Shown: positions 4,426 to 56,872 of the stretch, piece after piece | Position numbering within the stretch: position 1 is the stretch's first letter | Layout: each line of letters starts with the position of its first letter | IMG/VR virus record: IMGVR_UViG_3300042558_003926 | Coordinates: 124,001-188,000 of that record | DNA length: 64,000 nt | Direction: 5' to 3' (one strand) | Made by a program: the position numbers and the translations under genes | Notes under the pieces: model-generated | The model's input: only the letters and a program-made list of their open reading frames with translations | Database searches by the model: none | Told to the model about the DNA's origin: nothing

Positions 4426-5052
4426 ATGGGACAAATAAAATACTTCGAACAATTTTTAAATGAGAGAGAACTTCCCGATAACCAAGGGGAAGTTCTCGTC
4501 ATTTTAGGGGCACCTGGATCAGGGAAGGGAACACTAGCAAAAGTTCTACAAGATGACTATGGAATCAATCATATATCCACTGGTGATCTAATTAGAAAGT
4601 CGGATGACGAGGAGCTTAAAAAAATAATAGCTGGTGGTGATCTTGTACCTGACTCAATGATAGTTAAAATGCTCGTTTCCGAACTAAAGAATATAGACCC
4701 TTTAGAGGGTGTTATTTTTGATGGATTCCCAAGGACAATTAAACAAGCTAAAAAGCTTGATTCTATTCTTGGCAAGATGGGGCTTGGGTTAAATCACGCG
4801 ATATTTCTTGATCTTGATGAAAAAATAGCCAAGGAAAGGATAAAAGAAAGAGCAAAGAAAGAGGATAGAAAGGATGATTCCAGCGATGAGGTTATAGAAA
4901 ACAGATTCAAAGAATATCACAATAAGACATTCCCTTTAGTTGACTTTTATAAGAGAAGTAGAAAACTTCTAAAAATAGATGCTGAGGGGGGAAAGGATAA
5001 AGTACTCTCTAAAGTTGTTGAAAAACTGGGACTTACTAAGAAGAAAAAGTAA
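4426..5052 (+). CDS. adk: Adenylate kinase with N-terminal leader peptide
   Basis: GAPGSGKGT P-loop, HISTGDLIR, DGFPRT, RKDD. Extra N-terminus MGQIKYFEQFLNE. Confidence 0.92.
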   Translation: MGQIKYFEQFLNERELPDNQGEVLVILGAPGSGKGTLAKVLQDDYGINHISTGDLIRKSDDEELKKIIAGGDLVPDSMIVKMLVSELKNIDPLEGVIFDGFPRTIKQAKKLDSILGKMGLGLNHAIFLDLDEKIAKERIKERAKKEDRKDDSSDEVIENRFKEYHNKTFPLVDFYKRSRKLLKIDAEGGKDKVLSKVVEKLGLTKKKK

Positions 5053-5070
5053 TTCCATAAAATCATATAA

Positions 5071-5718
5071 ATGAGCACCACTAGTGGAGACTTTGTAAAT
5101 TCCGTAAGGGATATTCTAAATAAGAAAAAGACCGATGATAACCGGAGGAGAATTATCTTAAGGGATATTTTTGATAATCTTGTAAGCTATCTAAAAAATT
5201 CAGGAAAAGCTGAGATAAGAAATGTTAAAGATTTCGAGACTAACGAGATGTCTTATCTTCTGAATCTATATCTAGAATCCGATAATATCAACGAGGATTT
5301 TTATAATATTCTGAAAAACAATGGGGTTGTTCTGGATAGGCACGAAATCGATTCTAAAAATTCACTCTATGTAGCTAACTTTGGTAAAATAATGCTATCG
5401 AATTTAAATTCAGATAGTATTTGTTTTTTAGAATTGAAGATAACAGGCAAATATTTCTTCACATTAAGAATAACTCTAAAGACCGAAGCTGTTAGCTATC
5501 GAGTTTATGATACCAATTACTTTTATTTGAAATTATGGGTTTTTGATGGTATTGATTTTTCTAATCACGATATCCAGATAAGAACTCAGGATAGGAGCAA
5601 AAAGAAGATGAGGGTAGATCTAAACTCAAACTACTACTTCAATATAATGTTTGATAAGATGGGTGAAGTAGTTGAAACAAATATTTCAAAAAAAAGAGGA
5701 GCAAAACTGAATCACTAG
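5071..5718 (+). CDS. Hypothetical protein
   Basis: 215-aa ORF in operon context. Confidence 0.6.
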   Translation: MSTTSGDFVNSVRDILNKKKTDDNRRRIILRDIFDNLVSYLKNSGKAEIRNVKDFETNEMSYLLNLYLESDNINEDFYNILKNNGVVLDRHEIDSKNSLYVANFGKIMLSNLNSDSICFLELKITGKYFFTLRITLKTEAVSYRVYDTNYFYLKLWVFDGIDFSNHDIQIRTQDRSKKKMRVDLNSNYYFNIMFDKMGEVVETNISKKRGAKLNH

Positions 5719-5749
5719 GATATAATTATAAACAGATAAACAAAGAATA

Positions 5750-7033
5750 ATGTCAAAGAACAAAATGAAGAAAAAGAGTCCGGTTCCTATGAAGAGCATG
5801 ATTTCTCCCGTAGCTATGAAAAGTCCTTTATCTAACACAGGAAAACAAACGATTAGCTTGTGTCTTGTTATGATCGTAAAAGACGAGGAAGATACGATGG
5901 AGAGATGCTTGAGAGCTGTTGCACCTTATATAGAATACTGGGTAATCGTAGATACTGGATCCGGAGATAAAACCAAAGAGGTTATTAAAGCAACAATGGA
6001 TGATTTAGGAATCCCTGGTGAATTACACGAAAGACCTTGGGTTAACTTTGAAGTTAATAGGACCGAGAGCTTAAACCTGGCTAAGAATAAATGCGACTAC
6101 AGATGGATAATCGATGCCGATGATACATTCTTTACTGAATCACCTACAGTAAACCCGTTCGCAGGTTTGGACACCAAGCCAGATTGTTATCAGCTAATGT
6201 ATAAGCTGAACCAATTACAGTACAACAGAGCACAGATCGTAAAGTCAGATCAAAATTGGGTTTACAAGGGAGTTCTACATGAATATTTATATTTAGACGA
6301 GGAAAGAATAGAGGTGATGCAGGTTCCTATCAGGGGATGCTATGTTATGGCTGATATTTCGCCTCTAAAAAGAGCTGGTAGTTTGGAGGAGAAATATTCA
6401 AACGATGCTAAGATTCTAGAGGATGCTTTAGTTAAAGAACCAGATAATGAGAGATACATGTTCTATCTCGCTCAAAGCTATAGAGATGCAAATCAACTAG
6501 AGAAGGCCATAGAATCATATCAGAAGAGAGTTGATATGAAAGGATGGGAAGAGGAGGTTTATTATTCCATGTATATGATAGCTAAAATTAGCGAAAGAAT
6601 AGGTAAACCAGATTCAGAGATAATCGATCTATATTCCAGAGCTTGGGAGTACAGACCTGCTAGATTAGAAGCGGTCTTCCACACTATGAGAAAGTTAAGA
6701 GACCAGGGAAGACACCTTATATCTTTTGCCTATGGAGACATTGCAATAAAAACTAAGGGTACTGGAGATATACTCTTTATAGAACCAGAAATCTGGCAGT
6801 GGAGACTTCTGGATGAGTATTCGCTAGCCGCATATTATATAGGAAATCCTGAAATTTCGTTGGAAAAAACTGGTGCCATTGTAAATGCTCCTTTCTTTAA
6901 GGATATCCTACAGGAAGAACAGAAGAGACTTCTTAAGAATATGGATTTCTATAAAAGAGGTGCTGAGGAAAAGATGAAAAAACTAAAACAAATGCAGGCA
7001 CTACAGCAAATGCAAGGTTTAAAGAATGTATAG
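5750..7033 (+). CDS. GT2-family glycosyltransferase with TPR-like C-terminus
   Basis: LVMIVKDEE, IVDTGSGD, DADD (DxD), GVLHEY, then helical repeats (FYLAQSYRD). Confidence 0.8.
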   Translation: MSKNKMKKKSPVPMKSMISPVAMKSPLSNTGKQTISLCLVMIVKDEEDTMERCLRAVAPYIEYWVIVDTGSGDKTKEVIKATMDDLGIPGELHERPWVNFEVNRTESLNLAKNKCDYRWIIDADDTFFTESPTVNPFAGLDTKPDCYQLMYKLNQLQYNRAQIVKSDQNWVYKGVLHEYLYLDEERIEVMQVPIRGCYVMADISPLKRAGSLEEKYSNDAKILEDALVKEPDNERYMFYLAQSYRDANQLEKAIESYQKRVDMKGWEEEVYYSMYMIAKISERIGKPDSEIIDLYSRAWEYRPARLEAVFHTMRKLRDQGRHLISFAYGDIAIKTKGTGDILFIEPEIWQWRLLDEYSLAAYYIGNPEISLEKTGAIVNAPFFKDILQEEQKRLLKNMDFYKRGAEEKMKKLKQMQALQQMQGLKNV

Positions 7034-7035
7034 TG

Positions 7036-7043
7036 GATATATA
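7036..7043 (+). promoter_or_regulatory. Putative late promoter GATATATA
   Basis: Ends 18 nt upstream of the ATG at 7062. Confidence 0.55.
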
Positions 7044-7061
7044 CTATAAAAATAGTATAAA

Positions 7062-7616
7062 ATGATACATCTTTTAGAATTTGAATCTTTTTCTAATTTC
7101 CTAGTAAAAGAAAATGAGGTAAAGGGAGGAATTCCTATTTATAATGAGACTGTTTTCATGCAGAGCAATAACACTAAGCCTGCTATGATGGTAAAAGCTC
7201 CTGAACTCGTTTCTACTCTAACTAGATTATTAGAGGACCAGGAAAAAGGAGATATCGAAAAAATAATCGTTATTGCTGAAATTCCGACACAAGGTAAGAA
7301 CGCTCCTCAATACGTAAGAGATGACGTTCAGATCGAAAGAGACCGAATGGCTAAAAGAAAATATGCTTTATACGGAAGTAGGGTAGAAAGAGCGGATAGA
7401 CCGGAAGAAGAGGAATACACTGATGCTATCAATATATTCGTAGATTCAGAATTTATTGTTAAGGGTGTAATTAATAAATTAGGTAAGGACTATATTATAG
7501 CAATTCCAGATTCAAAGAGAAGAAAAGCTGAAGCTAGTAAATCAGAAATGGAATACTACACGGTTTATCTAGAGCCTAAACAAGTAGATGAGGTATTTTT
7601 TACTCCCTCTAAATAA
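7062..7616 (+). CDS. Hypothetical protein with capsid-targeting-like leader
   Basis: N-terminus MIHLLEFESFSNFLVKENE. Has its own motif upstream and a terminator downstream. Confidence 0.65.
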   Translation: MIHLLEFESFSNFLVKENEVKGGIPIYNETVFMQSNNTKPAMMVKAPELVSTLTRLLEDQEKGDIEKIIVIAEIPTQGKNAPQYVRDDVQIERDRMAKRKYALYGSRVERADRPEEEEYTDAINIFVDSEFIVKGVINKLGKDYIIAIPDSKRRKAEASKSEMEYYTVYLEPKQVDEVFFTPSK

Positions 7617-7639
7617 ATCTAAATGAAACATAATCTAGA

Positions 7640-7670
7640 AGCTCCAATATTAGTATTGGAGCTTTTTTTT
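7640..7670 (+). terminator. Rho-independent terminator
   Basis: AGCTCCAATA-TTAG-TATTGGAGCT followed by a T run. Confidence 0.85.
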
Positions 7671-7715
7671 ATGATATAAGATTAGCTACGAATTAAACCA
7701 AAACTGGAAATAAAA

Positions 7716-9509: not shown

Positions 9510-9547
9510 TTTTTTATATCCGTGTTATTTAGTTATTTTTATAGTGC

Positions 9548-12637: not shown

Positions 12638-12645
12638 TCATAAAA

Positions 12646-14079: not shown

Positions 14080-14844
14080 ATGAGACTTAGAATCACAAGT
14101 ACCGCAAACCTAATTACACTTTTGCGAAGATTGAAAACGGTAGAAAGGAGCGTTATCCTTGAATTAAAAAAGGATGGAATTTTTTGTAAAGTTCATACAC
14201 CGGATAAGTCGGTAATGAAATATTCTTCCGTTAAATTCGACGATATTCTAGAAGGAGAAATAGATTGGAAAAAAATTAAATGTGATCGTATAAAAATCGG
14301 GATAATTGATGTTACCCGTTTAATAGATGCCTTTAAACACTTCAGACCAGAGGAAGAGATCTTTATGGAGATTGAAACTGATAATTTGGAAGGATCTTGT
14401 GTTTCTACTGAGGTTAAATTAATTTCTGCTTCACTTAGCATTAGACTAAAATGTGCGGATCTTTCACTACTTTCTTATGTTGAGGATAATATATTAGATC
14501 TTGTTCATAGCAGGGAAGATGCTTTATTAAGATTTAAAATCTACCAATCTGACTTCACCACGATTACATCCCTATGTGGATTAGAAACAAACTCCGAGGA
14601 GATTTTATGCTTCAATGTGAAGGACACAAATGTTTATGCTATAGGGGATTCATTCAATTATAAGCTGAACATAGGATCTTCCGAGATAATTTTAGAAGAC
14701 GGTGAGAGTTCACCAAATATCTATAAAAAGGAATTATCTTACATGGAACCAGAAACTTGCGAGGTTTATGTTCATGACAACAGAATGGTTATGGTATCTG
14801 AACAATCTTCTACGTCTATAGCTATGGGATTAGTTGAAAAATAA
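14080..14844 (+). CDS. Putative sliding clamp (gp45/PCNA-like)
   Basis: About 250 aa with alternating beta/alpha pattern, overlapping the start of the PolB C-half. No diagnostic motif. Confidence 0.45.
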   Translation: MRLRITSTANLITLLRRLKTVERSVILELKKDGIFCKVHTPDKSVMKYSSVKFDDILEGEIDWKKIKCDRIKIGIIDVTRLIDAFKHFRPEEEIFMEIETDNLEGSCVSTEVKLISASLSIRLKCADLSLLSYVEDNILDLVHSREDALLRFKIYQSDFTTITSLCGLETNSEEILCFNVKDTNVYAIGDSFNYKLNIGSSEIILEDGESSPNIYKKELSYMEPETCEVYVHDNRMVMVSEQSSTSIAMGLVEK

Positions 14845-15997
14845 AAATATGACACAGGAAGAAATCCTAGAAATAAAACAAAAAATAGAGAGGCTTACTG
14901 AAGTTAAGAACGAACTTAAGAACGAGGAGCAGGCTATTAAATTAACAATGAACTCCATCTATGGAGCGATTGGTAATAACTGGTTTGTGTGTTTCAATCC
15001 TGATGTTGCTGAATCTGTAACCCTACAGGGACAGGACCTAATAAAGTATTCGGAGAAGATTCTCCATAAATACTTCCATGAGCACTGGCACCTAGATAAG
15101 GAGCTCCATGAAAAATTAGGGCTTACCGCCGTGAAGAAGGTTTCTAGACCCCTGGTTGTTTATGGTGATACTGATTCTAATTACGTGACGTTTCAGGAGG
15201 TGGTAGATTCATGTGACTATAAAGGAGACCCAAAGGATTTAATTCTTAAGATAAATGAATATAGACTGAATGATTATCTGAAGAAGTGTTTTGATATCTA
15301 CTCCAAAAAATGGAATACAGACAATTACCAGGACTTTGAGTTAGAGACACTTTCTTTTAACGCCATATTCTTAGGTAAGAAGAAATATGTTGCTAACCTG
15401 GCTTATGATTCAGGTATCCACACAGATCCTCTATCTCAGTTGAAGTTTACTGGAGTTGAGATGATTAAAGGAGGTACACCTCCATTTGTAAGAGAGAAGC
15501 TTGTTTATCTAACAAAATTCATTTTCTCAAAAGGTAGAAATTTTAATATCAGGGACTTTGTTAAGGAACTTAAGGATATAAAGAAGGAATTCAAAGTCCA
15601 GGAACCTAAAAACATATCAGCATCCGTAAATATTAACAATTACGAGAAATTCATTCTGAATGATACCACCGCTTTCGAAGTGGCAAAGGCTTGTCCAATC
15701 CACGTTAGAGCTTCTGGTTATCACAACTACCTTCTAAATTCGTCTAAATATAAGAGTAAATATTCCCTAATAAGAAGCGCTGAGAAGGTTAACTATTACT
15801 TTGTTAAAACAAAATCTATAGCTGACAATAATGTCTTTGCATATCCTCAGGGAACATTTCCCTATGAATTTGCTCCGCCTATAGATTATGATGAGCAGTT
15901 TACTAAGACTATTTTGGATCCTATAAATAGGTTTATTGAAGTTATGGGGTACAATAAAATAAGTCCTAACTTGTTTATGATTAACGCACTTTTTTAA
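14834..15997 (+). CDS. Family B DNA polymerase, C-terminal half
   Basis: KLTMNSIYG (motif B), YGDTDS (motif C), KKKY, C-terminal clamp-binding-like LF. Confidence 0.93.
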   Translation: MKNKNMTQEEILEIKQKIERLTEVKNELKNEEQAIKLTMNSIYGAIGNNWFVCFNPDVAESVTLQGQDLIKYSEKILHKYFHEHWHLDKELHEKLGLTAVKKVSRPLVVYGDTDSNYVTFQEVVDSCDYKGDPKDLILKINEYRLNDYLKKCFDIYSKKWNTDNYQDFELETLSFNAIFLGKKKYVANLAYDSGIHTDPLSQLKFTGVEMIKGGTPPFVREKLVYLTKFIFSKGRNFNIRDFVKELKDIKKEFKVQEPKNISASVNINNYEKFILNDTTAFEVAKACPIHVRASGYHNYLLNSSKYKSKYSLIRSAEKVNYYFVKTKSIADNNVFAYPQGTFPYEFAPPIDYDEQFTKTILDPINRFIEVMGYNKISPNLFMINALF

Positions 15998-16756: not shown

Positions 16757-16764
16757 GATATATA
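16757..16764 (+). promoter_or_regulatory. Putative late promoter GATATATA
   Basis: Ends 21 nt upstream of the ATG at 16786. Confidence 0.55.
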
Positions 16765-16785: not shown

Positions 16786-18243
16786 ATGCCATCAAATAGA
16801 GTTCTCGATTTTTTCTCCTATATTAATGAGGCTAAGGTAGACACCACAAAAATAGTGGTTCTGACCGGTAACGTTAAGGGAAGTAAGACTTCATCGTCTT
16901 TTGAGAAAGAGTGTAAGAAAAGAAAAATAGAATGCTATATAGTAGACGTAAACGATGCTATTATAGAGAAAACATACAATGGACACACATTTAAGACGGG
17001 GGACAAGGAAATCCAAATAGACCCGAACTCTACTGTAATTGTACCAAGAAGAGGAGTTTTAGAAAACTCATACACTAAGCAGATCCTTTCATATCTGGAG
17101 GATTCCAGATATTTTACAGTAAACACTTTGGAATCTATGGAAGTGTGCGAGAATAAGTATTTAACTTCTCAGATATTGGAGGAGAGTGGTTTACCAGTTC
17201 CTAAATGTGCTTTAGTTCCCAATGAGGATTTTCTAGATTCCGCTCTAAAACAAATAGGTGGTAAATTCCCAGTAGTTATGAAGCTGCTTGCAGGAACTCA
17301 GGGAATAGGAGTTTCTATAGTTGATTCGTACTCTTCATTGAAATCTGTCTACCAAACCATCAGAAAGCTAGATGGAGATAATGAGATTTTAATCCAAGAA
17401 AAAATAGATTCCAACTTTGATCTTAGAATTCAAGTTATAATCAAGAAATTCGACCCTTTACAGCCAGATCCTGATAACTGCATTATCCTGGGATCGATGA
17501 AAAGACAGGCGGTTAAGAAAGACTTTAGAACCAACTATTCTTTAGGTGGATCTGTTTCGAAATACAACATATCTAAAGAAATAGAAGAAATTGCATGTAA
17601 AGCGGCAAATGCAGTAGGTTGCCATTGGTGTGGGGTTGATATTATGATAGATTCTAAAACTAAGAAGCCTTATATACTGGAAGTTAATTCCTCTCCTGGT
17701 ACGGAAGGAATATCGCAAGCAATCGGAAAGCCTATAGTTGATGACGTTATAAATTATCTTGTTGAAAAGAGCAACTGGTCTTATTCCAATTTAGAAATAG
17801 GATACTTAGAAACTATAGAGATACCAGGAATTGGTAATATAGTAGCTAAGTTTGATACCGGAAACGGAGCAAAATCATGCAGTATGCACTGTGATGAGGT
17901 TGAAGAGGTTGACGGTAAGCTAAAATGGAAAATCGGTAAGAAGAATTTTGTTAGCGATATCGTGGGATATTCGGATGCCGAAGTAGGTAGGGATATACAC
18001 ACTAGACCAATAATAGAGATGGACATAATGTTCCACGGTGTTCTGGTACCTGCAGTTAAGATTTCTCCAGTCGACAGGACAGAGAAAAGCACACCATTCT
18101 TAGCAAATAGAGGATTTATGAGAAGACTTGGTCTAATTGTTAATCCATATAAAGCCTTTGTGGTTTCAGAAGAACCTAAAGGAGGATATCAGGTTGGGGC
18201 TTCTAAGGGTAAATCCCACGCAGGAATTAAATTCGAAAAATAA
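16786..18243 (+). CDS. RimK-like ATP-grasp ligase fused to retropepsin-like (DTG) protease domain
   Basis: CENKYLT, GTQGIGV, IQEKI, FRTNYSLGG, GVDI, EVNSSPG. C-terminal AKFDTGNGA. Confidence 0.88.
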   Translation: MPSNRVLDFFSYINEAKVDTTKIVVLTGNVKGSKTSSSFEKECKKRKIECYIVDVNDAIIEKTYNGHTFKTGDKEIQIDPNSTVIVPRRGVLENSYTKQILSYLEDSRYFTVNTLESMEVCENKYLTSQILEESGLPVPKCALVPNEDFLDSALKQIGGKFPVVMKLLAGTQGIGVSIVDSYSSLKSVYQTIRKLDGDNEILIQEKIDSNFDLRIQVIIKKFDPLQPDPDNCIILGSMKRQAVKKDFRTNYSLGGSVSKYNISKEIEEIACKAANAVGCHWCGVDIMIDSKTKKPYILEVNSSPGTEGISQAIGKPIVDDVINYLVEKSNWSYSNLEIGYLETIEIPGIGNIVAKFDTGNGAKSCSMHCDEVEEVDGKLKWKIGKKNFVSDIVGYSDAEVGRDIHTRPIIEMDIMFHGVLVPAVKISPVDRTEKSTPFLANRGFMRRLGLIVNPYKAFVVSEEPKGGYQVGASKGKSHAGIKFEK

Positions 18244-18254
18244 CAAAATATAAA

Positions 18255-18467
18255 ATGGAAAACTTAAGAGAGTTTGGTAATCTTAGCGAATCTGCTCAGG
18301 ATGAAAAAACAGAAAAAATCCAAGTTCTTCTTTCCAAAGAAGATTTAACAGATTTAAGCAGAAAGATCTCTAAAGAGGCTTTAGCTAAGGGTGAAGCACC
18401 TGTTTCTATTTCACACTATGTAAGAAAGCTAATCAGAAGAAATCTAGGAAAAACTACCGAAGATTAA
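18255..18467 (+). CDS. Small ribbon-helix-helix-like protein with leader
   Basis: KIQVLLSKED...SISHYVRKLIR pattern. N-terminus MENLREFGNLSES. Confidence 0.5.
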   Translation: MENLREFGNLSESAQDEKTEKIQVLLSKEDLTDLSRKISKEALAKGEAPVSISHYVRKLIRRNLGKTTED

Positions 18468-18469
18468 TA

Positions 18470-18790
18470 ATGAGGCTTATAATAGAGTTTGATGATTATC
18501 TGGAGGATGACCTAGAACTAGGTGAGCCAGAGAAGGCAATGATCCGGAACTGGATACAGAAATATGAGAAGTACTTTAATTTCCACAATAGCGGAGAATT
18601 TGTAGATTCAATCGAACAGGTAACAAAAGACTGTGTGGAACAGCTCGGTCTAGATAAATCAAAAACAGATGCGGTTCAGGATTACCTAGAAAGTCTCTAT
18701 ACATTAGCGGATGGTCTTTCTGTGGTAATGTCTCCTGGACCAGAATTTCAATACACTAATATAGATCAAGTTCAAAGATTTCAATATTAA
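18470..18790 (+). CDS. Hypothetical protein with leader-like N-terminus
   Basis: MRLIIEFDDYLED. Confidence 0.55.
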   Translation: MRLIIEFDDYLEDDLELGEPEKAMIRNWIQKYEKYFNFHNSGEFVDSIEQVTKDCVEQLGLDKSKTDAVQDYLESLYTLADGLSVVMSPGPEFQYTNIDQVQRFQY

Positions 18791-22573: not shown

Positions 22574-23062
22574 GGGCCCGCTTTGGATTTGACAGGCGGA
22601 GGTAGTTCTTTGAGATGCAGGCAGTCTTAGATTGGAAAGACTTTAATTACCTATCAAACAATAAACGCAAACGTTTACAATTCTGAGGATATCATGAGTA
22701 TCCCAACTTCACTTACTCGTTCGGTAGTAACTGAAGAGGTTGAGCTAGCTGTTGCAGCCTAACCAATTGGCGGCAACTGCCAATCATAAAAGAAAGTTGC
22801 AAGCTGGCAAGAAAAAAGGTTCGTAGTATTGCCTATTTGACATTGAGTGGAACCTTGAGGATTAGTCCAATACCCATTTAGATCGTCACTATCAATGTCA
22901 GTGAAACTTGGCTAATACCTGGGAGTAGACCAGACTGAGCGTTAAGTCTGAAAGAAAAAAGAAACGCACCCAAAGTTTGTTGATGTCAAACAATCAACTA
23001 AGCCTGTGAATGAGTCCAATGGACATTCGATCTGGACGAGGGTTCGACCCCCTCCGGGTCCA
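22574..23062 (+). ncRNA. ssrA: tmRNA (about 489 nt)
   Basis: 5' GGGCCCG pairs with 3' CGGGTCC+A, giving the G3-U70 Ala determinant. GATTTGACAGG D-loop analog, GGTTCGACCCC T-arm, internal tag ORF ending LAVAA. CCA is not encoded. Confidence 0.93.
22667..22762 (+). other. tmRNA tag reading frame ANVYNSEDIMSIPTSLTRSVVTEEVELAVAA*
   Basis: GCA resume codon after ATAAAC. Ends in AVAA-TAA. Confidence 0.8.
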
Positions 23063-23070
23063 CTAAATTA

Positions 23071-23099
23071 ATCCCATCCTCTACCGGATGGGATTTTTT
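23071..23099 (+). terminator. Terminator after ssrA
   Basis: ATCCCATCC / GGATGGGAT followed by a T run. Confidence 0.85.
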
Positions 23100-23101
23100 G
23101 T

Positions 23102-23109
23102 GATATATA
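23102..23109 (+). promoter_or_regulatory. Putative late promoter GATATATA
   Basis: Ends 5 nt before the ATG at 23115. Confidence 0.55.
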
Positions 23110-23113
23110 GGAA

Positions 23114-23729: not shown

Positions 23730-23848
23730 CGCGGGTGGGATTTTTCTTTTAAAATTTTCAACCGAAATTTTGATTAGAACGATGAACGGAACACTTACAC
23801 ATAACTTTTTAATCCCCTCCGGTCCTAGGGCATTTGGGACTCCGTACG

Positions 23849-23856
23849 GATAAATA
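23849..23856 (+). promoter_or_regulatory. Putative late promoter GATAAATA
   Basis: Ends 5 nt before the ATG at 23862. Confidence 0.55.
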
Positions 23857-28781: not shown

Positions 28782-29075
28782 ATGGAATCAGGAAGCTTCA
28801 AAGAATTCATGGATATGCAGGACAACGAAGGTCCTTTCCTAGGGGATTTAATTTACCCCAAAGTTAAGGAGGCGATTCTAGAGAACTATGAGGAGGCTTC
28901 TTTATTTACACTGATTCCCACAGACAACAAGGAATATCCCGAGGGTATTGTTTTTACGTTAGATCGAGCTCAATTTTCAATATTTCTGGAAAATTATTTA
29001 AAGCTGTGCGAAGATGAGGAGCAGTATGAAAGATGTTTGGAAATATTGGATCTACAGGAGCTCATTACAGAATGA
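28782..29075 (+). CDS. UVR-like motif protein
   Basis: EQYERCLEILDL. Confidence 0.55.
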   Translation: MESGSFKEFMDMQDNEGPFLGDLIYPKVKEAILENYEEASLFTLIPTDNKEYPEGIVFTLDRAQFSIFLENYLKLCEDEEQYERCLEILDLQELITE

Positions 29076-31233: not shown

Positions 31234-31241
31234 GATATATA
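31234..31241 (+). promoter_or_regulatory. Putative late promoter GATATATA
   Basis: Upstream of the homing endonuclease. Confidence 0.55.
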
Positions 31242-40063: not shown

Positions 40064-40071
40064 GATATATA
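40064..40071 (+). promoter_or_regulatory. Putative late promoter GATATATA
   Basis: Upstream of the ATG at 40090. Confidence 0.55.
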
Positions 40072-40089: not shown

Positions 40090-40650
40090 ATGTCAAGAAT
40101 AGTTTCATTTGATCAGTTCAAAACAACATCAGATAAAATGAGCGGAAAATCACGTTCATACAGCTCTTCTAAAAACGAAGGGCACGAAGAGCACGAAGAG
40201 CATGATAACCGTGGAGGACATCAGCACTATATGTTTTTCCAAAATCTAATTTCAATTAAGCATCACATTGAGGAGATACTAAATATGAATCCGGATCAGG
40301 TTGATGATCTACTTCAAAATGGACACGATTGGGCTTGCGATCATATTGCAACATCTAAAGATGATATCCAAGAGGTAGGGGAATGGCTAAGAAACGAAAT
40401 GGAAATGTCAGGAGAAGGTGGAGAGCACCACGAAGAGGAAGAAGAGGAAGAGCCAGAAAACGTTGTCGTTGACATCGAAGGAGATAATGACGAAGTTGAG
40501 GTAGCTGACAACGGTGAAGAATCCGGGGAAGATGAGGAAGAGGAGGAAGACGATGACGAGGAAGAAGAGGAAGAAGAGGAGCAACCTTATAATGAGGATG
40601 ACGATTACAACCTCGGTGAAGGTTTTGATGACGATGATTACGAAGAGTAA
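40090..40650 (+). CDS. Highly acidic protein with leader (start likely 40090)
   Basis: MSRIVSFDQFK, and an Asp/Glu-rich C-terminal half. Confidence 0.7.
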   Translation: MSRIVSFDQFKTTSDKMSGKSRSYSSSKNEGHEEHEEHDNRGGHQHYMFFQNLISIKHHIEEILNMNPDQVDDLLQNGHDWACDHIATSKDDIQEVGEWLRNEMEMSGEGGEHHEEEEEEEPENVVVDIEGDNDEVEVADNGEESGEDEEEEEDDDEEEEEEEEQPYNEDDDYNLGEGFDDDDYEE

Positions 40651-44810: not shown

Positions 44811-44881
44811 AGTCAGGTGGCTTAGTGGTAAAGCCCGACCTTTTAAGTCGGAGTACGTAGGTTCGATTCCTGCCCTGACTA
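44811..44881 (+). tRNA. tRNA-Lys (anticodon TTT at 44842-44844)
   Basis: Acceptor stem AGTCAGG/CCTGACT, D-arm GCTT/AAGC, anticodon stem CCGAC/GTCGG with loop CTTTTAA, T-loop TTCGATT. No encoded CCA. Confidence 0.9.
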
Positions 44882-44894
44882 CTAAAAACAAAAT

Positions 44895-48012: not shown

Positions 48013-48015
48013 ATT

Positions 48016-48723: not shown

Positions 48724-48725
48724 AA

Positions 48726-49206: not shown

Positions 49207-49274
49207 GGATATTTGTGTTTCCGTAATATCTTATTTTTTGGGTATATAGCATAAAAATAAGAAGACAGAGGAGA

Positions 49275-50050: not shown

Positions 50051-50060
50051 AAATAAAAGT

Positions 50061-51179: not shown

Positions 51180-51190
51180 AACAACATTAA

Positions 51191-51616: not shown

Positions 51617-51620
51617 GATT

Positions 51621-51833: not shown

Positions 51834-51900
51834 AATTTTATATATCGGTAATTTTTTTTTATCGGCTCTTTTTATTATCTTTAGGATCAAACCAATCAAA

Positions 51901-52371
51901 ATGACATTCGATAAATTTTCAGACATTATAGAGAGATTAAAAAGGCATTCGGAGATAGTAAATCAGGCATACTCTTTAAAAATAGATCTAATAGATTTTA
52001 GCGATGATCTTCATCGAATAATAGATGATCTAGTTAGAGAAATATACGGTGAAACCGGGTATGATTGGTTTTCTTGGTTTTGCTGCGAGAATGATTTTGG
52101 TAGAAAGGATTGGTCATCACTTCCTATCTTGGGATCTTCTAGAGAAATAGATGGTAAAACAGCTAGTGTAGGAAAAATAAACGGCGGAGAGATTGGAATA
52201 GGTGCATGGGATGAGAACGGGGATCCTATCTGTTACGACGTAAGATCAACCTGGACGTTTCTTGAAAAAAATTATTCGAGAATTCAAAAGAATGATGAAA
52301 TAGATCCTTCCCTGTGGGAAACAATCAAAGACAGCGGAGATAAAATTAAAAATAGAAAAAATAACAAATAA
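51901..52371 (+). CDS. Hypothetical protein
   Basis: 156-aa ORF. Confidence 0.55.
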   Translation: MTFDKFSDIIERLKRHSEIVNQAYSLKIDLIDFSDDLHRIIDDLVREIYGETGYDWFSWFCCENDFGRKDWSSLPILGSSREIDGKTASVGKINGGEIGIGAWDENGDPICYDVRSTWTFLEKNYSRIQKNDEIDPSLWETIKDSGDKIKNRKNNK

Positions 52372-52384
52372 TAAATTTTAAAAA

Positions 52385-52711
52385 ATGAAAAATCTTTATC
52401 TTCCTCTAGTCTTATTTTTTGCTTCAGGCAGTATAGTAGCTCAAACATCCTATAAGTCGGATATAATAAATCCGGTTTATGCAGACTTTGCATACGCTAA
52501 CCCAAGTCGGGATACATTATTTCTTTCTATAGATGGAAATGAGATGGGGAGAAGAACGTATCTTATATGGGAGGGAGATCCTAACTGGGATAGAAAAAAT
52601 CCGATTGTTTTGCTTGTTCCTCAGGAATTCATAGATCAAAGAAAATCGATATACCTAAATACCGATTCAGAATCTAATAATAGATCTAGAACAAAGAGAA
52701 ATAGAAAATAA
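52385..52711 (+). CDS. Exported hypothetical protein
   Basis: Signal-peptide-like N-terminus. Confidence 0.55.
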   Translation: MKNLYLPLVLFFASGSIVAQTSYKSDIINPVYADFAYANPSRDTLFLSIDGNEMGRRTYLIWEGDPNWDRKNPIVLLVPQEFIDQRKSIYLNTDSESNNRSRTKRNRK

Positions 52712-52719
52712 ATTATAGA

Positions 52720-53697
52720 ATGGTGAGAAATACAAGGATACGTAAAAGAATTTTGGATATGGTGGAAAGAACAGAAGAACTCTCTTACCCTCAGAGTAAC
52801 GAGGATAACGAAAACATTGACGTTAAAAACGACTTCGTACAGTGGTCAATAGTGGGAGACGGCAGTTTCTGTCCATCTTCTAAAACCATGGATATGCTAG
52901 ATCCAGGTTTATACGAGCCTTGTTATAATAACCGTATGGGTGAATGGACATTACTGAAGATGACCGTTAACACAGACGAGCTTTTTGAACTTCCAACTCC
53001 GGAAATAAGCGAGATATTAGATGATCTAAAAAAGTTCTGGCAGAAGAAAGATGAATATAAAAGCTTCGGTGTTCTCCATAAAAGAGGTATTTTATTATAT
53101 GGAGATCCAGGATGTGGTAAATCTGGTATACTCCAGCTTTGCATGAAGCACATAATAAAGGATCTCAATGGTTTAGTTATAAATCTAAAGGACGAGGATA
53201 CAGTTAGAGGTTACATTTCCATAGTGGATAAACTCAGACAAATAGAGCCAAGAAGACCGATTATAGTTATACTCGAAGATATTGATTCCATAGCTTCCGA
53301 GGGAAATTTTGTAACTTCTCAGCTGCTAAATATGCTGGACGGGATTAAGCAAACGGAGAATGTTGCTTATATAGCAACGACTAACTATCCGGAGAGATTG
53401 GAAGAAAGAATAACTAATAGGCCATCTCGATTTGATAGAAGATATTATGTTTCGCCTCCTTGTGAAAATGTGAGAAGATCCTATCTTGAAAGAAAAACAA
53501 AAGGAAACATGGAACAAGAGGAGATTGAAGTGTGGATCAAAGATACTGAAGGTATGTCTCTTTCTCATCTTAAAGAACTCCTAATATCTGTTAAAGTTTT
53601 AGAAACACCTTATCAACAGGCAATAAACCATCTTAGAGGTTTAGAAACCAAACCAAGAGGAAAGGGGCAGAAAAGAGTAGGATTTAGCGGAAATTAG
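52720..53697 (+). CDS. AAA+ ATPase (BCS1-like)
   Basis: GDPGCGKS, ILEDID, LLNMLDG, TTN, RPSRFDR. Confidence 0.92.
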   Translation: MVRNTRIRKRILDMVERTEELSYPQSNEDNENIDVKNDFVQWSIVGDGSFCPSSKTMDMLDPGLYEPCYNNRMGEWTLLKMTVNTDELFELPTPEISEILDDLKKFWQKKDEYKSFGVLHKRGILLYGDPGCGKSGILQLCMKHIIKDLNGLVINLKDEDTVRGYISIVDKLRQIEPRRPIIVILEDIDSIASEGNFVTSQLLNMLDGIKQTENVAYIATTNYPERLEERITNRPSRFDRRYYVSPPCENVRRSYLERKTKGNMEQEEIEVWIKDTEGMSLSHLKELLISVKVLETPYQQAINHLRGLETKPRGKGQKRVGFSGN

Positions 53698-53698
53698 C

Positions 53699-53926
53699 AT
53701 GGAACTTAATAAAGATCAGAAAAAACACATCGAGGAAGCTCTGGACTTTTATCCGGAGCTTACCTATGAAAACTTAGAAGAAATTCACGAGGAGATTCTC
53801 CATAACATGATAGACGATTTTATCATAGATCTTTCAGATGACGAGGAGGGGGATTTGCATATGACTTACTCAAACCTAGTCTATGATGATCTGGAGGAAA
53901 GAATAAAAAAAATAAAAGCAAAATGA
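53699..53926 (+). CDS. Small acidic protein
   Basis: 75-aa ORF. Confidence 0.5.
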   Translation: MELNKDQKKHIEEALDFYPELTYENLEEIHEEILHNMIDDFIIDLSDDEEGDLHMTYSNLVYDDLEERIKKIKAK

Positions 53927-54780
53927 AAGATGCGCTAGGCGACAGAATGAAGGACTTCTATGAAGACCGAACACGTTACAAGTTGGGACGTCGCACCAAC
54001 ACAATCATCCGTATCGACGGAAAAGCATTCCATACTTACACACGAGGACTTAAACGTCCATTCGACGAAGGGTTAATGGAAGACATGAATCGTACAACTG
54101 AGTACCTATGTCAGAATATCCAAGGAGCAAAATTTGGATACGTTCAATCAGATGAGATTTCAATTCTCATCACTGATTACGATGACATTTCTACACATGC
54201 TTGGTTTGACGGAAACTTGCAGAAAATGGCAAGTATTGCTGCTTCATTGGCAACTGCTGAATTTAATAGACTAAGATTGGCAAGAATTCTTTATGAAGAC
54301 CCGACCAAAGTTTGGGGTGAGATAATCTCATCATATAAACTTGCAATGTTTGATGCACGAGTATTTCAAATCCCTTACCAAGAGGAAGTGATTAACTACT
54401 TTATTTGGAGACAACAAGATGCTACAAGAAATTCTATTTCTTCTGTTGCTCAAGCTTATTTTTCTTCAAAGGAGTTGCACGGTAAGAAAACCAATCAGAT
54501 GCAAGATATGCTAATGTTGGAAAAAGGGATTAACTGGAATGACTTTACCCCTCGTGAAAAAAGAGGAAGTTTGATTCGTAAAGTAGAAAAGAAATTTATC
54601 AAATCGGATTCTATCGAAGATGTAGCAAAAACACCAAACACTGAGAGAATTGATGATAAACACATTTATACTAGATCAAAATTTGAAGCCGATCCGGAAA
54701 CTCCAATCTTTACCCAAGATAAAGACTATCTTAGATTGATGATGCCTCAAGAAAGAGTGACTACAGAATCACTAGTTTGA
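53923..54780 (+). CDS. tRNA-His guanylyltransferase (Thg1-like 3'-5' polymerase)
   Basis: RMKDFYE, RIDGKAFH, YVQSDEIS, FDARV, WRQQD. Confidence 0.93.
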   Translation: MKDALGDRMKDFYEDRTRYKLGRRTNTIIRIDGKAFHTYTRGLKRPFDEGLMEDMNRTTEYLCQNIQGAKFGYVQSDEISILITDYDDISTHAWFDGNLQKMASIAASLATAEFNRLRLARILYEDPTKVWGEIISSYKLAMFDARVFQIPYQEEVINYFIWRQQDATRNSISSVAQAYFSSKELHGKKTNQMQDMLMLEKGINWNDFTPREKRGSLIRKVEKKFIKSDSIEDVAKTPNTERIDDKHIYTRSKFEADPETPIFTQDKDYLRLMMPQERVTTESLV

Positions 54781-55340
54781 TAACCATGGAGGGGAAAAAG
54801 ATATTATTTCTGGATCACGATGGAGTTATCTGCTTATGTGATCAATGGGGAAGTAGATATAAGAAAAAAGGATACGACAGTAATCCAGAAACCCCTATGG
54901 ACATAAGAATGGATAACTTCGACAGAAAAGCAGTTAAAGTTCTAAATGAAATCGTAGATGTTACTGGATGTGACATAGTGATTTCTTCAGATTGGAAAAG
55001 ATGGGGAACCCTGGAACAAATACAGGAAATGTATCGAACCAGGGGTATCAAACCCCCTATAGATACTACCCCCTTCTTCTCCGCTTTACTCAAAGAAAAA
55101 AAGATTCCGTCTTTTCTAGAATACACCAGGGAAGATTCTCTTGAAATAGAGAGAAGTTATGAGATAAATTACTGGTTAGAAACACACCCGGAAGTGACAC
55201 ATTGGGTTGCTCTTGATGATCTGGATATGTCGAAAAGAGAAGCATGGGGTCTCGATAATTTCGTTCATTGTAAAAGATCATACAGGGAAGGCATAAAACA
55301 ATCAGGGCTTAAAGATAAAATAATAAAGCACCTGATTTAA
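54777..55340 (+). CDS. HAD-superfamily protein (RNA-repair 'Swiss Army Knife' type)
   Basis: FLDHDGV, ISSDW, EI..W, WVALDD, G. Confidence 0.85.
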   Translation: MITMEGKKILFLDHDGVICLCDQWGSRYKKKGYDSNPETPMDIRMDNFDRKAVKVLNEIVDVTGCDIVISSDWKRWGTLEQIQEMYRTRGIKPPIDTTPFFSALLKEKKIPSFLEYTREDSLEIERSYEINYWLETHPEVTHWVALDDLDMSKREAWGLDNFVHCKRSYREGIKQSGLKDKIIKHLI

Positions 55341-55365
55341 ATCCATCCATCAATTATATTTTTTG

Positions 55366-55373
55366 GATATATA
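55366..55373 (+). promoter_or_regulatory. Putative late promoter GATATATA
   Basis: Ends 5 nt before the ATG at 55379. Confidence 0.55.
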
Positions 55374-55378
55374 ATAGT

Positions 55379-56872
55379 ATGGAAAATATCATATCTTTTA
55401 GCACATTTTCATCGATTAATGAATCGGTGGATCCTAATGCTACTAATATCATTATAGGAGATTCTGCATCCCCTCTGATGGCTTTAAATATCAAAAATGC
55501 TAGTCTTTTGTCTAATCAACAGGGAGAAGGTTCTCTTTGGAAAGGTGGGAAGGGAGTTAAATGGTTAAAATCTGCAGTTTCTAAATATCCAATTTCTCCG
55601 AGAATACAGAACGTTGTCATCAACATTGGCACCAACGGAGGTTTTAATAAGAAGGATGACATAAAGGGACTATACACCGAACTTAAGAGAGTATTCCCTA
55701 ATGCTAGATTCCTACAATTACAGGGAAGCTGGGGATGGGGAGGAAATAGGAATGTAACAGAGGCACAGGTTAAGGAATACTACAAAGGGTACGAAAAGGA
55801 GGGAGCTATCATAGTTTATCCAGCAAAGGGATATGTTGCAACCGATAGAGAAGCACACACCAATAGACCAGTCTTGGCTAAGATCGGTGCTGAAGTAGAC
55901 CGTTTAATAAATACACCAGGTAAAGTCGTTTCTTCTGAAGTTTCGTATTCTACTACATCCTCAGGACAGGGAGAAAATACACAACAGTATTCTACCGGAT
56001 CTTCTAATGTTATAGGAGGAATTATATCCAGAAAAGGAGATCCATATAAATACAAGGTGGAAAATGATCACTGGATGGCAAAAAGAGACGATCACACTAG
56101 ATGGTATGAAATAACAGGGAAGGACTTTAAACCGGCATATCAAGTTTCAATTGATATATTAGATACAGAAAATCCTACCTCTAGAACAGAAAAAGCTCCA
56201 AAAAGAACTGTTAAAAATCCAGGGACTAGTACCAATACCAATACAAACACGGTCACTAACACCCAAGACGATATAGATCAGGTTATTCTTCCTTTAGAGA
56301 AGGGAGCGGATCCGGAAAAGCTAGATCCTAAGATCTCCAAGGAATTCAATTTTCATTTAATTCCCGACGGGAAAGAAACCAACTACAGAAGTGCTCAATT
56401 ACCTATGAAGCACATGAAGAACATGTATATTAAATACGGTATTAAGAGAGTTATCAGATTAAACGGCGACGGGAAGGACGCAAAACATCATATGCTAAAC
56501 AAAGCAGTTACCATAGAGGAAGAAAAAGCTCTATGTAAGGAGATAGGATGTGAATTCCATAAGTTATCATCAGTTAAAGATCAAGCGAAAGTAAACGAGC
56601 TTCTAGCTAAGGGAAACACACTTATACACTGTGCCCACGGAGCTGATAGGACTGGGGGTAACGTCGGAGGATATTTATATGACACCAAAGTCAATTCTTC
56701 TTTAATCACACCGGAAGCAATCTGGAAATACACAACACAATACAACAACTGGAACTCAATGGCTAAGAATAGGCCAAAGAAATTTGCAGATGGGGGATAT
56801 TTAACGCAGGCACAAAAATTTGGAGTAGAGGATTTAGAATCTGCCAACGCTCTAGCTAAAAAATACAAATAA
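55379..56872 (+). CDS. Multidomain protein: leader, SGNH-like domain and Cys-phosphatase (PTP/DSP-like) domain
   Basis: MENIISFSTFSSINES, IIGDS and NIGTNG, HCAHGADRTG (CX5R). Confidence 0.7.
   Translation: MENIISFSTFSSINESVDPNATNIIIGDSASPLMALNIKNASLLSNQQGEGSLWKGGKGVKWLKSAVSKYPISPRIQNVVINIGTNGGFNKKDDIKGLYTELKRVFPNARFLQLQGSWGWGGNRNVTEAQVKEYYKGYEKEGAIIVYPAKGYVATDREAHTNRPVLAKIGAEVDRLINTPGKVVSSEVSYSTTSSGQGENTQQYSTGSSNVIGGIISRKGDPYKYKVENDHWMAKRDDHTRWYEITGKDFKPAYQVSIDILDTENPTSRTEKAPKRTVKNPGTSTNTNTNTVTNTQDDIDQVILPLEKGADPEKLDPKISKEFNFHLIPDGKETNYRSAQLPMKHMKNMYIKYGIKRVIRLNGDGKDAKHHMLNKAVTIEEEKALCKEIGCEFHKLSSVKDQAKVNELLAKGNTLIHCAHGADRTGGNVGGYLYDTKVNSSLITPEAIWKYTTQYNNWNSMAKNRPKKFADGGYLTQAQKFGVEDLESANALAKKYK

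Follow-up and report, generated by a model that had tools for sequence, protein, structure and literature searches.

A short N-terminal leader shared by unrelated proteins of a huge freshwater Bacteroidota phage is likely a T4-like capsid-targeting propeptide

The window, by which we mean the whole stretch of 64,000 nucleotides analysed here, comes from a huge phage of freshwater Bacteroidota, ~290 kb in size and from an uncultivated clade, whose replication and head genes are T4-like. A preliminary description of this stretch had listed ten N-termini sharing a hydrophobic-x-x-F-x-x-F core, and all ten (10/10) are present where it placed them. The genes are given below together with one further promoter-like element; a slash marks the predicted cut site at the leader end, and PSSM denotes the score on our leader matrix.

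4426..5052, plus strand: adenylate kinase (Adk), leader MGQIKYFEQFLNE/R (4426-4464); Pfam ADK 1.4e-38, PSSM 25.9 bits
7062..7616, plus strand: 184-aa protein of unknown function, leader MIHLLEFESFSNFLVKENE/V; PSSM 19.0 bits
16786..18243, plus strand: RimK-like ATP-grasp ligase, leader MPSNRVLDFFSYINE/A (16786-16830); Pfam RimK 2e-34
18255..18467, plus strand: 70-aa protein, leader MENLREFGNLSE/S; PSSM 16.8 bits
18470..18790, plus strand: 106-aa protein, leader MRLIIEFDDYLE/D; PSSM 17.3 bits
23115..23729, plus strand: 204-aa protein, 24-residue leader MKHIKLFEDFMNLDNLKGLQMIDE/D; PSSM 25.6 bits
23862..24689, plus strand: 275-aa protein with the same leader cassette as 23115, MKHIKLFEDFMNLDNLKGLQMINE/Y; first 66 nt identical to those of 23115
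28782..29075, plus strand: 97-aa protein, weak leader candidate MESGSFKEFMDMQDNE; PSSM < 10 bits
31234..31241, plus strand: further GATATATA promoter-like copy, preceding a gene without a leader
40090..40650, plus strand: 186-aa protein, leader core MSRIVSFDQF; PSSM 11.2 bits from the alternative start
55379..56872, plus strand: 497-aa protein, leader MENIISFSTFSSINE/S; PSSM 20.1 bits

The identities proposed earlier for Adk and the RimK-like ligase held (Pfam 1e-38 and 2e-34); no 'kinase-like' protein besides Adk could be identified. The 'phosphatase-like' label of the 55379 protein held in part, as it rests on below-threshold Pfam matches alone; this protein is possibly SGNH/GDSL hydrolase-like (IIIGDSA) with a phosphatase-like C-terminal part, the ESM Atlas GDSL result being just a lead. 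The longest ORFs for 23115 and 40090 begin at 23088 and 40027, respectively, and we prefer the shorter forms because GATATATA then lies ahead of the ATG (by 13 and 26 nt), whereas it would fall inside the longer ORFs.

The leader is a real shared N-terminal motif, and a stronger one than first reported. Counted from Met1, the pattern [ILVM]4-x2-F7-x2-[FYL]10 is found in 8 of 92 window proteins (4426, 7062, 18255, 18470, 23115, 23862, 40090 and 55379) vs. 0.14 expected given how often this pattern occurs inside proteins, a register enrichment with P = 2e-12, or 1e-10 if 23115 and 23862 are taken as one count. The shared core described earlier was therefore confirmed, with these eight in exact register, the same motif shifted by two residues in the 16786 protein, and only a weak form in 28782. 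N-terminal enrichment, proposed as a check at that time, is strong when measured against internal positions: the motif starts at residue 4 ~26 times more commonly than at internal positions, and 11% of N-termini reach at least 12 bits on the leader matrix (PSSM) vs. 0.11% of internal blocks (~100x). In leave-one-family-out scoring, 30 of the 40 flagged families score on a matrix built without them. The leader, which is 12–24 residues long with Leu, Ile or Met at P3 and a mean net charge of −1.55 across residues 5–16, is common to 30 unrelated protein families over ~100 related contigs, and at least 22 leader proteins lie within ~165 kb of one genome.

Conservation of the leader is at the level of the protein. 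In the ATP-grasp protein (16786), [VI]L[DN]FxxFLNE[AS] is kept in 40 orthologues with N14 and E15 invariant, and this conservation holds at 58–75% identity; across orthologues the invariant Leu is written with six codons, and Asn, Glu and Phe codons are split 10/10, 14/6 and 13/5, with the amino acids unchanged. The leader is kept in 10/10 unique orthologues of the 7062 protein (e.g., MKNLLEFESFNPINEA) and present in 23/26 unique orthologues of the 18470 protein, the Adk orthologue in contig L041 has the N-terminus MVIVKDFNTFLNE/R, and the N-terminus of the weak candidate 28782 is conserved in orthologues (contigs L022 and L033). The sequences, together with an AlphaFold2 model for the ATP-grasp protein, show the leader to be a disordered add-on ahead of folded enzymes: we regard it as an add-on tag because in Adk the Pfam domain begins only at residue 26 and the ATP-grasp model is disordered at residues 1–18 (pLDDT < 50), its first strand and fold beginning at residue 22.

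In most leaders the last three residues are (L/I)-N-E, and the next is Ser, Ala or Gly. Across leader families, P3-P1 is most often INE or LNE, and P1' is most often Ser, then Gly and Ala. The I/L-N-E ending named in the preliminary description was thus partly confirmed, holding for most leaders; about one-fifth of regex-defined leader families have no hydrophobic-x-Glu inside 25 residues, and the window proteins without a clear site of this kind are 40090, with no (L/I)-x-E nearby, and 28782, which lacks both a hydrophobic residue at P3 and an upstream promoter motif. Inside the Adk, ATP-grasp, CHAP and OmpA-like proteins such sites are not enriched, and the single site is at the leader end. 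We infer from sequence alone that the phage's own head protease would cut after the Glu of (L/I)-x-Glu; cleavage has not been observed.

GATA(T/A)ATA, previously described upstream of six leader genes, is indeed found 13–29 nt upstream of 7062 (at 7036-7043), 16786 (16757-16764), 23115 (23102-23109), 23862 (GATAAATA at 23849-23856), 40090 (40064-40071, within the longer ORF) and 55379 (55366-55373). Genes 18255 and 18470 likely share the promoter and transcript of 16786, since the intergenic gaps are only 11 nt (16786 to 18255) and 2 nt (18255 to 18470). The Adk gene has no promoter motif and follows a ribonucleotide reductase (RNR) gene after an 11-nt gap. The proposed check of co-occurrence, run with [GC]ATA[TA]ATA, gave upstream motifs for 9/22 leader genes vs. 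17/163 others (odds ratio 5.9, P = 8e-4); the remaining 13 leader genes have no copy of it themselves. GATATATA is not tied to the leader, because the copy at 31234..31241 precedes a leaderless gene, the N-terminus of which we take, reading by eye, to be GIY-YIG endonuclease-like. It is likely a late promoter, because the non-leader genes it precedes include the protease-capsid operon and baseplate, tail-fibre and GH19 endolysin genes; this is inferred solely from the identity of those genes, and metatranscriptome contigs were too sparse for transcription starts or timing around GATATATA.

By walking along contigs, we placed the head module of the same phage ~75 kb to the left of the window, where the following gene is found.

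L130:4943-6973: T4 gp21-type prohead protease fused to a repeat scaffold, 676 aa, with Peptidase_S77 and Peptidase_S80 matches

This protein scores 32.0 bits for Peptidase_S77 (cut-off 27) and 31.1 bits for Peptidase_S80 (cut-off 23.4), and has LNE at residues 7–9, as T4 gp21 has LIE-9. It contains eight [LI]NE sites (Poisson P = 7e-7) and 13 exact 14-residue repeats, Y-[LVI]-A/S-E-[NK]-[LV], each with L/V-A-E. The capsid protein belongs to Pfam Gp23, and its propeptide junction, HSLNE/SAGAY, does not vary among 76 orthologues, which have 51 distinct N-termini. Three neighbors of the capsid gene (387, 296, and 85 aa) bear the leader; by eye, the 387- and 296-aa proteins look coiled-coil and scaffold-like.

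The leader is also present on a CHAP hydrolase and an OmpA-like protein, both without signal peptides, which we infer would fit proteins ejected to open the cell wall. The predicted cargo, inferred from the leaders, comprises adenylate kinase, the ATP-grasp ligase, the CHAP peptidoglycan hydrolase, the OmpA-like peptidoglycan binder, a nucleotidyltransferase and many unknowns. The one related proteomic annotation is that of a YerA41 homologue of the ATP-grasp protein, labelled 'structural protein', but the preparation behind it also contained polymerases and helicases, and the GenBank record marks ribonucleotide reductase, too, as particle-associated. The leader was not found on tail-fibre or replication proteins, and in the baseplate region the matrix picks out just one protein, a doubtful case at 15.2 bits. 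A Sec or lipoprotein signal peptide was considered and rejected: the leaders are acidic and have no hydrophobic run of at least 13 residues, although such runs were filtered out by design, and true signal peptides in the window belong to other genes (58628-63592, minus strand). A DnaJ homologue is encoded in the window, and the phage encodes both DnaJ and Hsp20 homologues.

Taken together, our hypothesis, which we consider likely, is that the leader serves as a T4-type capsid-targeting propeptide. The T4-style reading put forward in the preliminary description is supported by our sequence tests because the protease, the LNE/S capsid junction, the scaffold sites, the leader ends, the shared promoter motif, the leaderless tail and replication proteins and the leader cassette agree, while packaging, cleavage and injection remain inferred and unproven. 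In the proposed mechanism, the short acidic amphipathic N-terminal peptide, with its hydrophobic-x-x-Phe-x-x-aromatic core, would dock the protein on the scaffolding core of the assembling prohead, and the gp21-type protease would then cut the leader at its terminal (Leu/Ile)-x-Glu, mostly L/I-N-E before Ser, Ala or Gly. That enzyme would also process the major capsid protein at HSLNE/S and cut the repeats of its own scaffold into small peptides; the mature cargo would remain in the head beside the DNA and enter the next cell. The motif, its enrichment, its protein-level conservation, its unstructured add-on nature, the protease, the capsid and scaffold sites and the late-gene promoter motif are shown at the level of sequence, whereas scaffold binding, cleavage, retention in the head and injection are inferences.

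[quoted passage not shown] Like the CTS, the leader is a short N-terminal peptide common to unrelated proteins, with key hydrophobic or aromatic residues at 4 and 7 and, in most cases, an ending of (L/I)-x-Glu before a small residue. The gp21-type protease likewise has L-x-E-9 near its own N-terminus, and in T4 this one enzyme both processes the gp23-type capsid protein and breaks down the scaffold, as is proposed here. However, the leader is longer than the 10-residue CTS, has an extra aromatic residue one helical turn later, and usually has Asn at P2; the tagged set amounts to at least 30 families across the clade rather than a handful, and includes enzymes (Adk and the ATP-grasp ligase), unlike the small basic anti-restriction proteins of T4; and the protease here is fused to a scaffold of 13 x 14-residue repeats. 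The likeness is one of pattern and logic, and homology is not demonstrable, because T4 internal proteins score weakly on the leader matrix (5.8 and 2.0 bits).

The phiKZ-like giant phages (phiKZ gp175, 201phi2-1, SPN3US gp245) also have large capsids, many internal proteins and a gp21-related protease cutting after Glu; paralogues there may begin with the same stretch of residues, a role in directing proteins to the prohead is assumed for the propeptides, and the protease of our phage also matches Pfam Peptidase_S80. However, their propeptides are mostly longer than 100 residues, with no common short motif and with Ser, Ala or Gly at P3. A phiKZ-type propeptide was therefore rejected, the leaders having 12–24 residues and Leu, Ile or Met at P3. 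Encapsulin cargo-loading peptides and bacterial microcompartment encapsulation peptides are short amphipathic terminal peptides that, with a flexible linker, send unrelated enzymes into shells, and encapsulin shells have the HK97 capsid fold. The leader resembles them, by analogy, as an amphipathic terminal peptide on unrelated enzymes, but those peptides are not removed by a protease, and their shells are not virions and make no delivery to another cell.

Huge phages of freshwater Bacteroidetes that encode bS21 have genomes of up to 331 kb (Chen et al., 2022, PMC9723584) and a conserved block of portal, 'prohead core scaffolding and protease' and capsid genes with late transcription. Our phage likely belongs to the same or a neighboring clade (freshwater, Bacteroidota hosts). 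A term search of that paper found no mention of an N-terminal leader, cleavage motif or promoter motif. Relatives with cultured hosts (MaF61, PTm1) share an [LI]NE-rich scaffold or capsid site, and no such leaders were found in the scanned parts of MaF61 (125 kb) and PTm1 (30 kb).

Alternatively, the leader might target proteins to the prohead core and be cut there, with most tagged proteins being assembly or scaffold accessories that are degraded or expelled, so that no enzyme arsenal is injected. The scaffold-like, apparently coiled-coil 387- and 296-aa capsid neighbors, which have further LNE sites, speak for this, as does the long repeat scaffold full of cut sites on the protease itself. 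However, Adk and the ATP-grasp, CHAP and OmpA-like proteins have one site at the leader end, which is the T4 internal-protein pattern (cut once and retained), and we consider this alternative unlikely. Similarly improbable is that the leader is a short linear motif for another hub, be it the sliding clamp, a phage chaperone, or a compartment for replication or assembly, and that its L/I-N-E ending has nothing to do with the head protease. In T4-like phages, sliding clamps are bound by acidic aromatic peptides that look similar, which would favor such a hub; the DnaJ homologue in the window and the absence of the late motif from Adk also speak for it. Against it, none of the 22 leaders matches the PIP box Q-x-x-[LIMV]-x-x-[FYW]-[FYW] or the beta-clamp motif Q-L-[SD]-L-F, L/I-N-E never varies where the capsid propeptide ends and is strongly enriched in the protease-scaffold, several leader genes are grouped next to the capsid gene, and the cassette shared by 23115 and 23862 stops at the predicted cut.

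It is much less plausible that the similarity is a nucleotide-level element of mRNAs with very short leaders, acting in translation initiation or near the promoter, with the peptide motif merely apparent. Several leader genes do start just 13 nt past the promoter-like motif, and in Bacteroidota-type genes, which lack Shine-Dalgarno sites, the first codons could matter for initiation, but this is contradicted by the synonymous codon use at invariant residues of the 16786 leader, and codons differ between families and the peptide motif also occurs where no promoter motif precedes the gene. That AT-rich N-termini, whose codons favor Phe, Ile, Asn, Lys, and Glu, resemble one another by chance is all but excluded by the enrichment statistics and by leader conservation among diverged orthologues; in AT-rich phage controls, no real gene reached 10 bits in T4 (68 kb), MaF61 (125 kb), PTm1 (30 kb) or LR756500 (31 kb).

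Against the capsid-targeting reading itself, neither proteomics nor biochemistry has shown a leader protein in the virion or cut, the Adk gene without a late motif lies directly behind ribonucleotide reductase genes, and a long cargo list that includes a housekeeping-type enzyme is unusual for a virion. The leader families without a hydrophobic-x-Glu, the purely inferential late role of GATATATA, the weak T4 scores and the lack of leaders in the scanned parts of MaF61 and PTm1 also count against it. A bolder form of the capsid-targeting reading, for which we see as much reason to doubt as to believe, is that the leader is a sequence-readable 'cargo code', any bearer of which would be loaded into the head and injected, with dozens of families including metabolic and modifying enzymes (adenylate kinase, the ATP-grasp ligase, the nucleotidyltransferase) and cell-wall enzymes, and with the leader cassette shuffled between genes by recombination. 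Such shuffling is suggested by the DNA-identical leader on two unrelated genes, as the first 66 nt of 23115 and 23862 are identical, i.e., the 24-codon leader minus its last two codons, both leaders end with I-[DN]-E, and the protein bodies beyond have no similarity. If this cargo code is true, recombination of the leader cassette would let the phage recruit new cargo quickly. Already with one such tag on dozens of unrelated proteins, enzymes among them, the packaged, probably injected protein cargo of this phage may be readable from sequence alone.

The leader, a short N-terminal tag with a hydrophobic-x-x-Phe-x-x-aromatic core that is often followed by (L/I)-x-E, is real, occurs across the phage family and is under selection at the protein level. 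The preliminary description had listed ten such N-termini in the window; all ten were found at the places it reported, and eight of them share an exact register from Met1, with a hydrophobic residue at position 4, Phe at position 7 and an aromatic residue or Leu at position 10. Based on the frequency of the same pattern at internal positions of the 92 window proteins, 0.14 such N-termini would be expected (P = 2e-12, or 1e-10 with the two genes that have identical leaders counted once). In a set of 2,375 distinct proteins drawn from the window and from related loci, 4.4% have the strict pattern starting at residue 4, compared with 0.17% per internal position. A position-specific score matrix trained on leader N-termini gave 12 bits or more for 11% of N-termini versus 0.11% of equal-size internal blocks, and 30 of the 40 flagged sequence families still reached at least 10 bits when the matrix was rebuilt without them. 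In the phage itself, of which only about 165 kb of one genome is covered, 22 of 185 proteins are flagged.

Proteins carrying the leader (window genes are named by their start coordinates; a slash marks the predicted cut)
4426: adenylate kinase (Adk), strong
7062: strong
16786: RimK-like ATP-grasp protein, strong
18255: strong
18470: strong
23115: strong
23862: strong
55379: strong
40090: moderate
28782: weak
Outside the window: CHAP peptidoglycan hydrolase, leader MSRILLFHEYLLE/S
Outside the window: OmpA-like protein, leader MARPVLNFADFLIE/S

Searches of Pfam and PHROGs returned nothing significant for the leader proteins 7062, 18255, 18470, 23115, 23862, 28782 and 40090, and many of the further carriers beyond the window are likewise proteins of unknown function. 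The tag was not seen on tail-fibre or replication proteins of the regions scanned, and the baseplate region contains a single matrix scorer, a doubtful 474-aa protein at 15.2 bits. The cell-wall enzymes bear the tag without signal peptides, as might be expected of ejected proteins that breach the wall, although this is an inference. Taking all leader-positive N-termini together, the triplets most frequent after the core are INE and LNE, and the next residue is most often Ser, followed by Gly and Ala.

Conservation of the leader acts on amino acids. In 20 orthologues of the ATP-grasp protein it reads [VIA]-L-x-[FY]-x-x-[FY]-[LI]-N-E-[AS]. Among orthologues of 61-92% identity, Asn14 and Glu15 are the only invariant positions within residues 1-25. 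In the 20 leaders Leu is encoded by six codons, and codon use is split 10/10 for Asn, 14/6 for Glu and 13/5 for Phe; this synonymous-codon diversity at invariant residues rules out an RNA-level or promoter-proximal element. The leader is also an addition to the proteins that carry it. The Pfam adenylate kinase domain of the 4426 protein begins only at residue 26. An AlphaFold2 model of the ATP-grasp protein shows no secondary structure in residues 1-18, where pLDDT is below 50, and its first strand starts from residue 22. A peptide that is strongly conserved yet unstructured has the look of a docking and cleavage motif, as inferred from sequence and model. Counted from the ATG, the first 66 nucleotides of the 23115 and 23862 genes are identical, i.e., all but the last two of 24 leader codons, and their leaders end in M-I-[DN]-E; the remaining protein sequences have no similarity, and the upstream DNA differs except for the promoter motif. 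From sequence alone, we read this leader as a portable module.

The 64-kb window has about 36% G+C, and its plus strand holds almost all genes up to 57.8 kb. Since it contains no structural genes, head genes were sought by walking along contigs of the same phage, and the head block was located in locus L130, about 75 kb left of the window start.

Replication and head genes of the phage
Window: T4-like replication and nucleotide-metabolism genes (ribonucleotide reductase, two topoisomerase II subunits, UvdE, DnaJ, thymidylate synthase)
Window 14834-15997 (+): C-terminal half of a split family-B DNA polymerase
L046:8502-9908, just left of the window: exonuclease and N-terminal half of the family-B DNA polymerase
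Leftward of the window: gp32 and helicase, then tail-fibre, baseplate and neck genes (Pfam T4 gp13 match)
L130:2157-4874: head block gene 1, 905-aa protein in portal position
L130:4943-6973: head block gene 2, 676-aa protease-scaffold (Peptidase_S77 and Peptidase_S80)
L130, head block gene 3: 579-aa capsid protein (Pfam Gp23)
L130, after the capsid gene: proteins of 387, 296 and 85 aa

The C-terminal half of the polymerase lies about 15 kb downstream of the N-terminal half, with ribonucleotide reductase, Adk, topoisomerase and DnaJ genes in between. The nearest relatives of the polymerase piece are uncultured huge phages and Lak megaphages; those of the capsid protein are again these, plus Tenacibaculum, Flavobacterium and Chryseobacterium phages. 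Neighbouring genes encode the type IX secretion tail of Bacteroidota. The ATP-grasp gene matches its counterpart on an IMG/VR contig of 289,651 bp at 100% identity, and its relatives occur on about 40 contigs (up to 430 kb). A megablast search with 25 kb of window sequence found no match among GenBank phages. The phage fits the group of freshwater huge Bacteroidetes phages of Chen et al. (PMC9723584). A minus-strand block (window 57960-63987, continuing into loci L043 and L048) encodes proteins with cleavable-looking signal peptides, among them a non-specific endonuclease, a lectin/laminin-G protein and, farther on, one with a type IX secretion tail. About 2 kb past the window end, near the point that would be window coordinate 65.8 kb, two independent assemblies break off, suggesting a variable region there. 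The window also encodes tRNA-Lys(UUU) (44811-44882) and, just upstream of the 55379 leader gene, a Thg1-like tRNA-His guanylyltransferase (53923-55340, plus strand; Pfam 4.5e-27) beside a HAD domain of the 'Swiss Army Knife' RNA repair type (3e-25); an RNA ligase lies farther right, in L048.

The 676-aa protein matches both Peptidase_S77, the T4 gp21 family (32.0 bits, cut-off 27), and Peptidase_S80, the phiKZ gp175 family (31.1 bits, cut-off 23.4); a PDB sequence search of solved structures gave no match. It has LNE at residues 7-9, where T4 gp21 has LIE-9, and contains eight [LI]NE triplets versus 0.7 expected (P = 7e-7), most of them conserved in 50 orthologues. The protease is fused to a long scaffold-like tail that contains 13 exact 14-residue tandem repeats, Y-[LVI]-A/S-E-[NK]-[LV]-x-x-x-I-x-Y-[ST]-[EK], each of which includes a hydrophobic-x-Glu and hence a potential cut site, a design that we interpret, on sequence grounds only, as that of a scaffold destined to be cut up into small peptides. 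The capsid protein starts MKLINEQEIYDTWSPIIESK...YCHYHSLNE/SAGAYNTLG, and its stretch YCHYHSLNESAGAY does not vary among 76 orthologues, which between them have 51 different N-termini. This N-terminus aligns with the propeptide of T4 gp23, which is cut at FLTE65/A to reduce the full-length chain of 521 residues to a mature 456. The proteins encoded after the capsid gene themselves begin with leaders (MKNIPSFKEFNQY... in the 387-aa, MTLLKFKDWDNLNE/A in the 296-aa and MLSFYDFMNE/D in the 85-aa protein), and a nucleotidyltransferase-like gene two genes before the protease starts (V)ARVLDYISFNNNVNE/A. From sequence alone, head genes and leaders are inferred to use the same cleavage code. Pfam found nothing in the 905-aa portal-position protein; it has a leader-like stretch, SVISFEDFERMLSENE, about 95 residues from the N-terminus, which scores below 15 bits and could conceivably mark a long processed N-terminal region, as in giant-phage portals.

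In T4, IPII and IPIII start MKTYQEFIAE/A and IPI starts MKTFKEF... (T4 record), and genetic work in the literature assigns targeting in this ten-residue leader to residues 4 and 7 and processing to 8 and 10 (PMC9026906; PMC8442874). In the leader described here, positions 4 and 7 are likewise occupied by a conserved hydrophobic residue and Phe; one more aromatic residue follows a helical turn later, before L/I-x-E. When the matrix was applied to 68 kb of T4, IPIII and IPII were the top real genes, at only 5.8 and 2.0 bits. The resemblance inferred from sequence is thus one of pattern and logic, and homology is not shown. No real gene reached 10 bits in the scanned parts of T4 (68 kb), Flavobacterium phage MaF61 (125 kb), Tenacibaculum phage PTm1 (30 kb) or the uncultured relative LR756500 (31 kb), and the leader was not found in the parts scanned of the latter three (125 of 168 kb in MaF61), so in this form it looks clade-specific. 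MaF61 has 17 [LIM]NE sites in its annotated prohead scaffold; in PTm1 the capsid protein has LTINE/N and the protease-scaffold contains five [LIM]NE sites. Protease specificity therefore seems to extend more widely than the leader itself, which is seen only in this clade.

Two full-length ATP-grasp homologues from distant phages also have N-terminal extensions. That of Pelagibacter phage Mosig (L002:2998-4383) is MQVQPFKNYLEE/A, suggesting that a similar tag may exist on the ATP-grasp enzyme of T4-like marine phages. The extension in Yersinia phage YerA41 (L001:2980-4401) is ...RRLLNKFEAADE, and this homologue is annotated as a 'structural protein', i.e., particle-associated. As evidence of packaging the annotation is weak, because polymerases, helicases and topoisomerases were present in the same particle preparation, and ribonucleotide reductase, too, is labelled particle-associated in the GenBank record.

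The motif GATA(T/A)ATA, previously noted upstream of six of the ten genes, was confirmed 13-29 nt before 6/10. Of the 22 leader genes, 9 have it upstream, as do 17 of the remaining 163 genes (odds ratio 5.9, P = 8e-4). The motif also stands before the operon for protease and capsid protein, a baseplate gene of the gp25-like type, one tail-fibre gene, further structural genes and the gene for the GH19 endolysin, and is similar to the late promoter of T4, TATAAATA. Three public freshwater RNA runs contained only 5-7% of the sampled words of a 4-kb test stretch, and their short, scattered contigs gave no information on transcription starts or timing. G+C-rich hairpins with TTAATCC or TAAATCC lie close upstream of several of these gene starts, at 23063-23110, at 23800-23856 and before 18255 and 55379; those at 23063-23110, 23800-23856 and 55379 directly precede the GATATATA motif, and those at 23063-23110 and 55379 are followed by a run of T. 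Such an order could represent a terminator-then-promoter arrangement. A 490-nt tmRNA gene (22574-23063, plus strand; tag peptide EEVELAVAA*, ARAGORN) is followed by a hairpin and run of T, just upstream of the 23115 leader gene.

Taken together, the leader is likely a T4-type capsid-targeting propeptide that is removed by the gp21-type protease of the phage, with scaffold binding, cleavage, retention in the head and injection all inferred. It would mark a large, partly enzymatic cargo for packaging. The main alternative keeps the same mechanism and holds that many of the tagged proteins are accessories of assembly and are not retained in the head, which we consider unlikely. It is also improbable that the leader targets a different hub, such as a clamp or chaperone, since the capsid protein and scaffold contain matching sites. 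Clamp-binding motifs matched none of the leaders.

If the leader is a capsid-targeting propeptide, the principle is the known one of T4, and the scale and cargo are unusual. T4 capsid targeting, which is in use as a way of loading phage heads with foreign proteins, would then extend to a distant lineage whose consensus differs, and the leader and protease form a defined pair that can be tested in vitro. The non-DNA contents of huge-phage heads are largely unknown, and most huge phages cannot be grown. If the leader marks packaged proteins, the injected proteome of this clade of abundant freshwater phages (about 100 contigs, up to 430 kb) could be predictable from metagenomes, and the predicted set would include enzymes that may be active in the host before phage gene expression.
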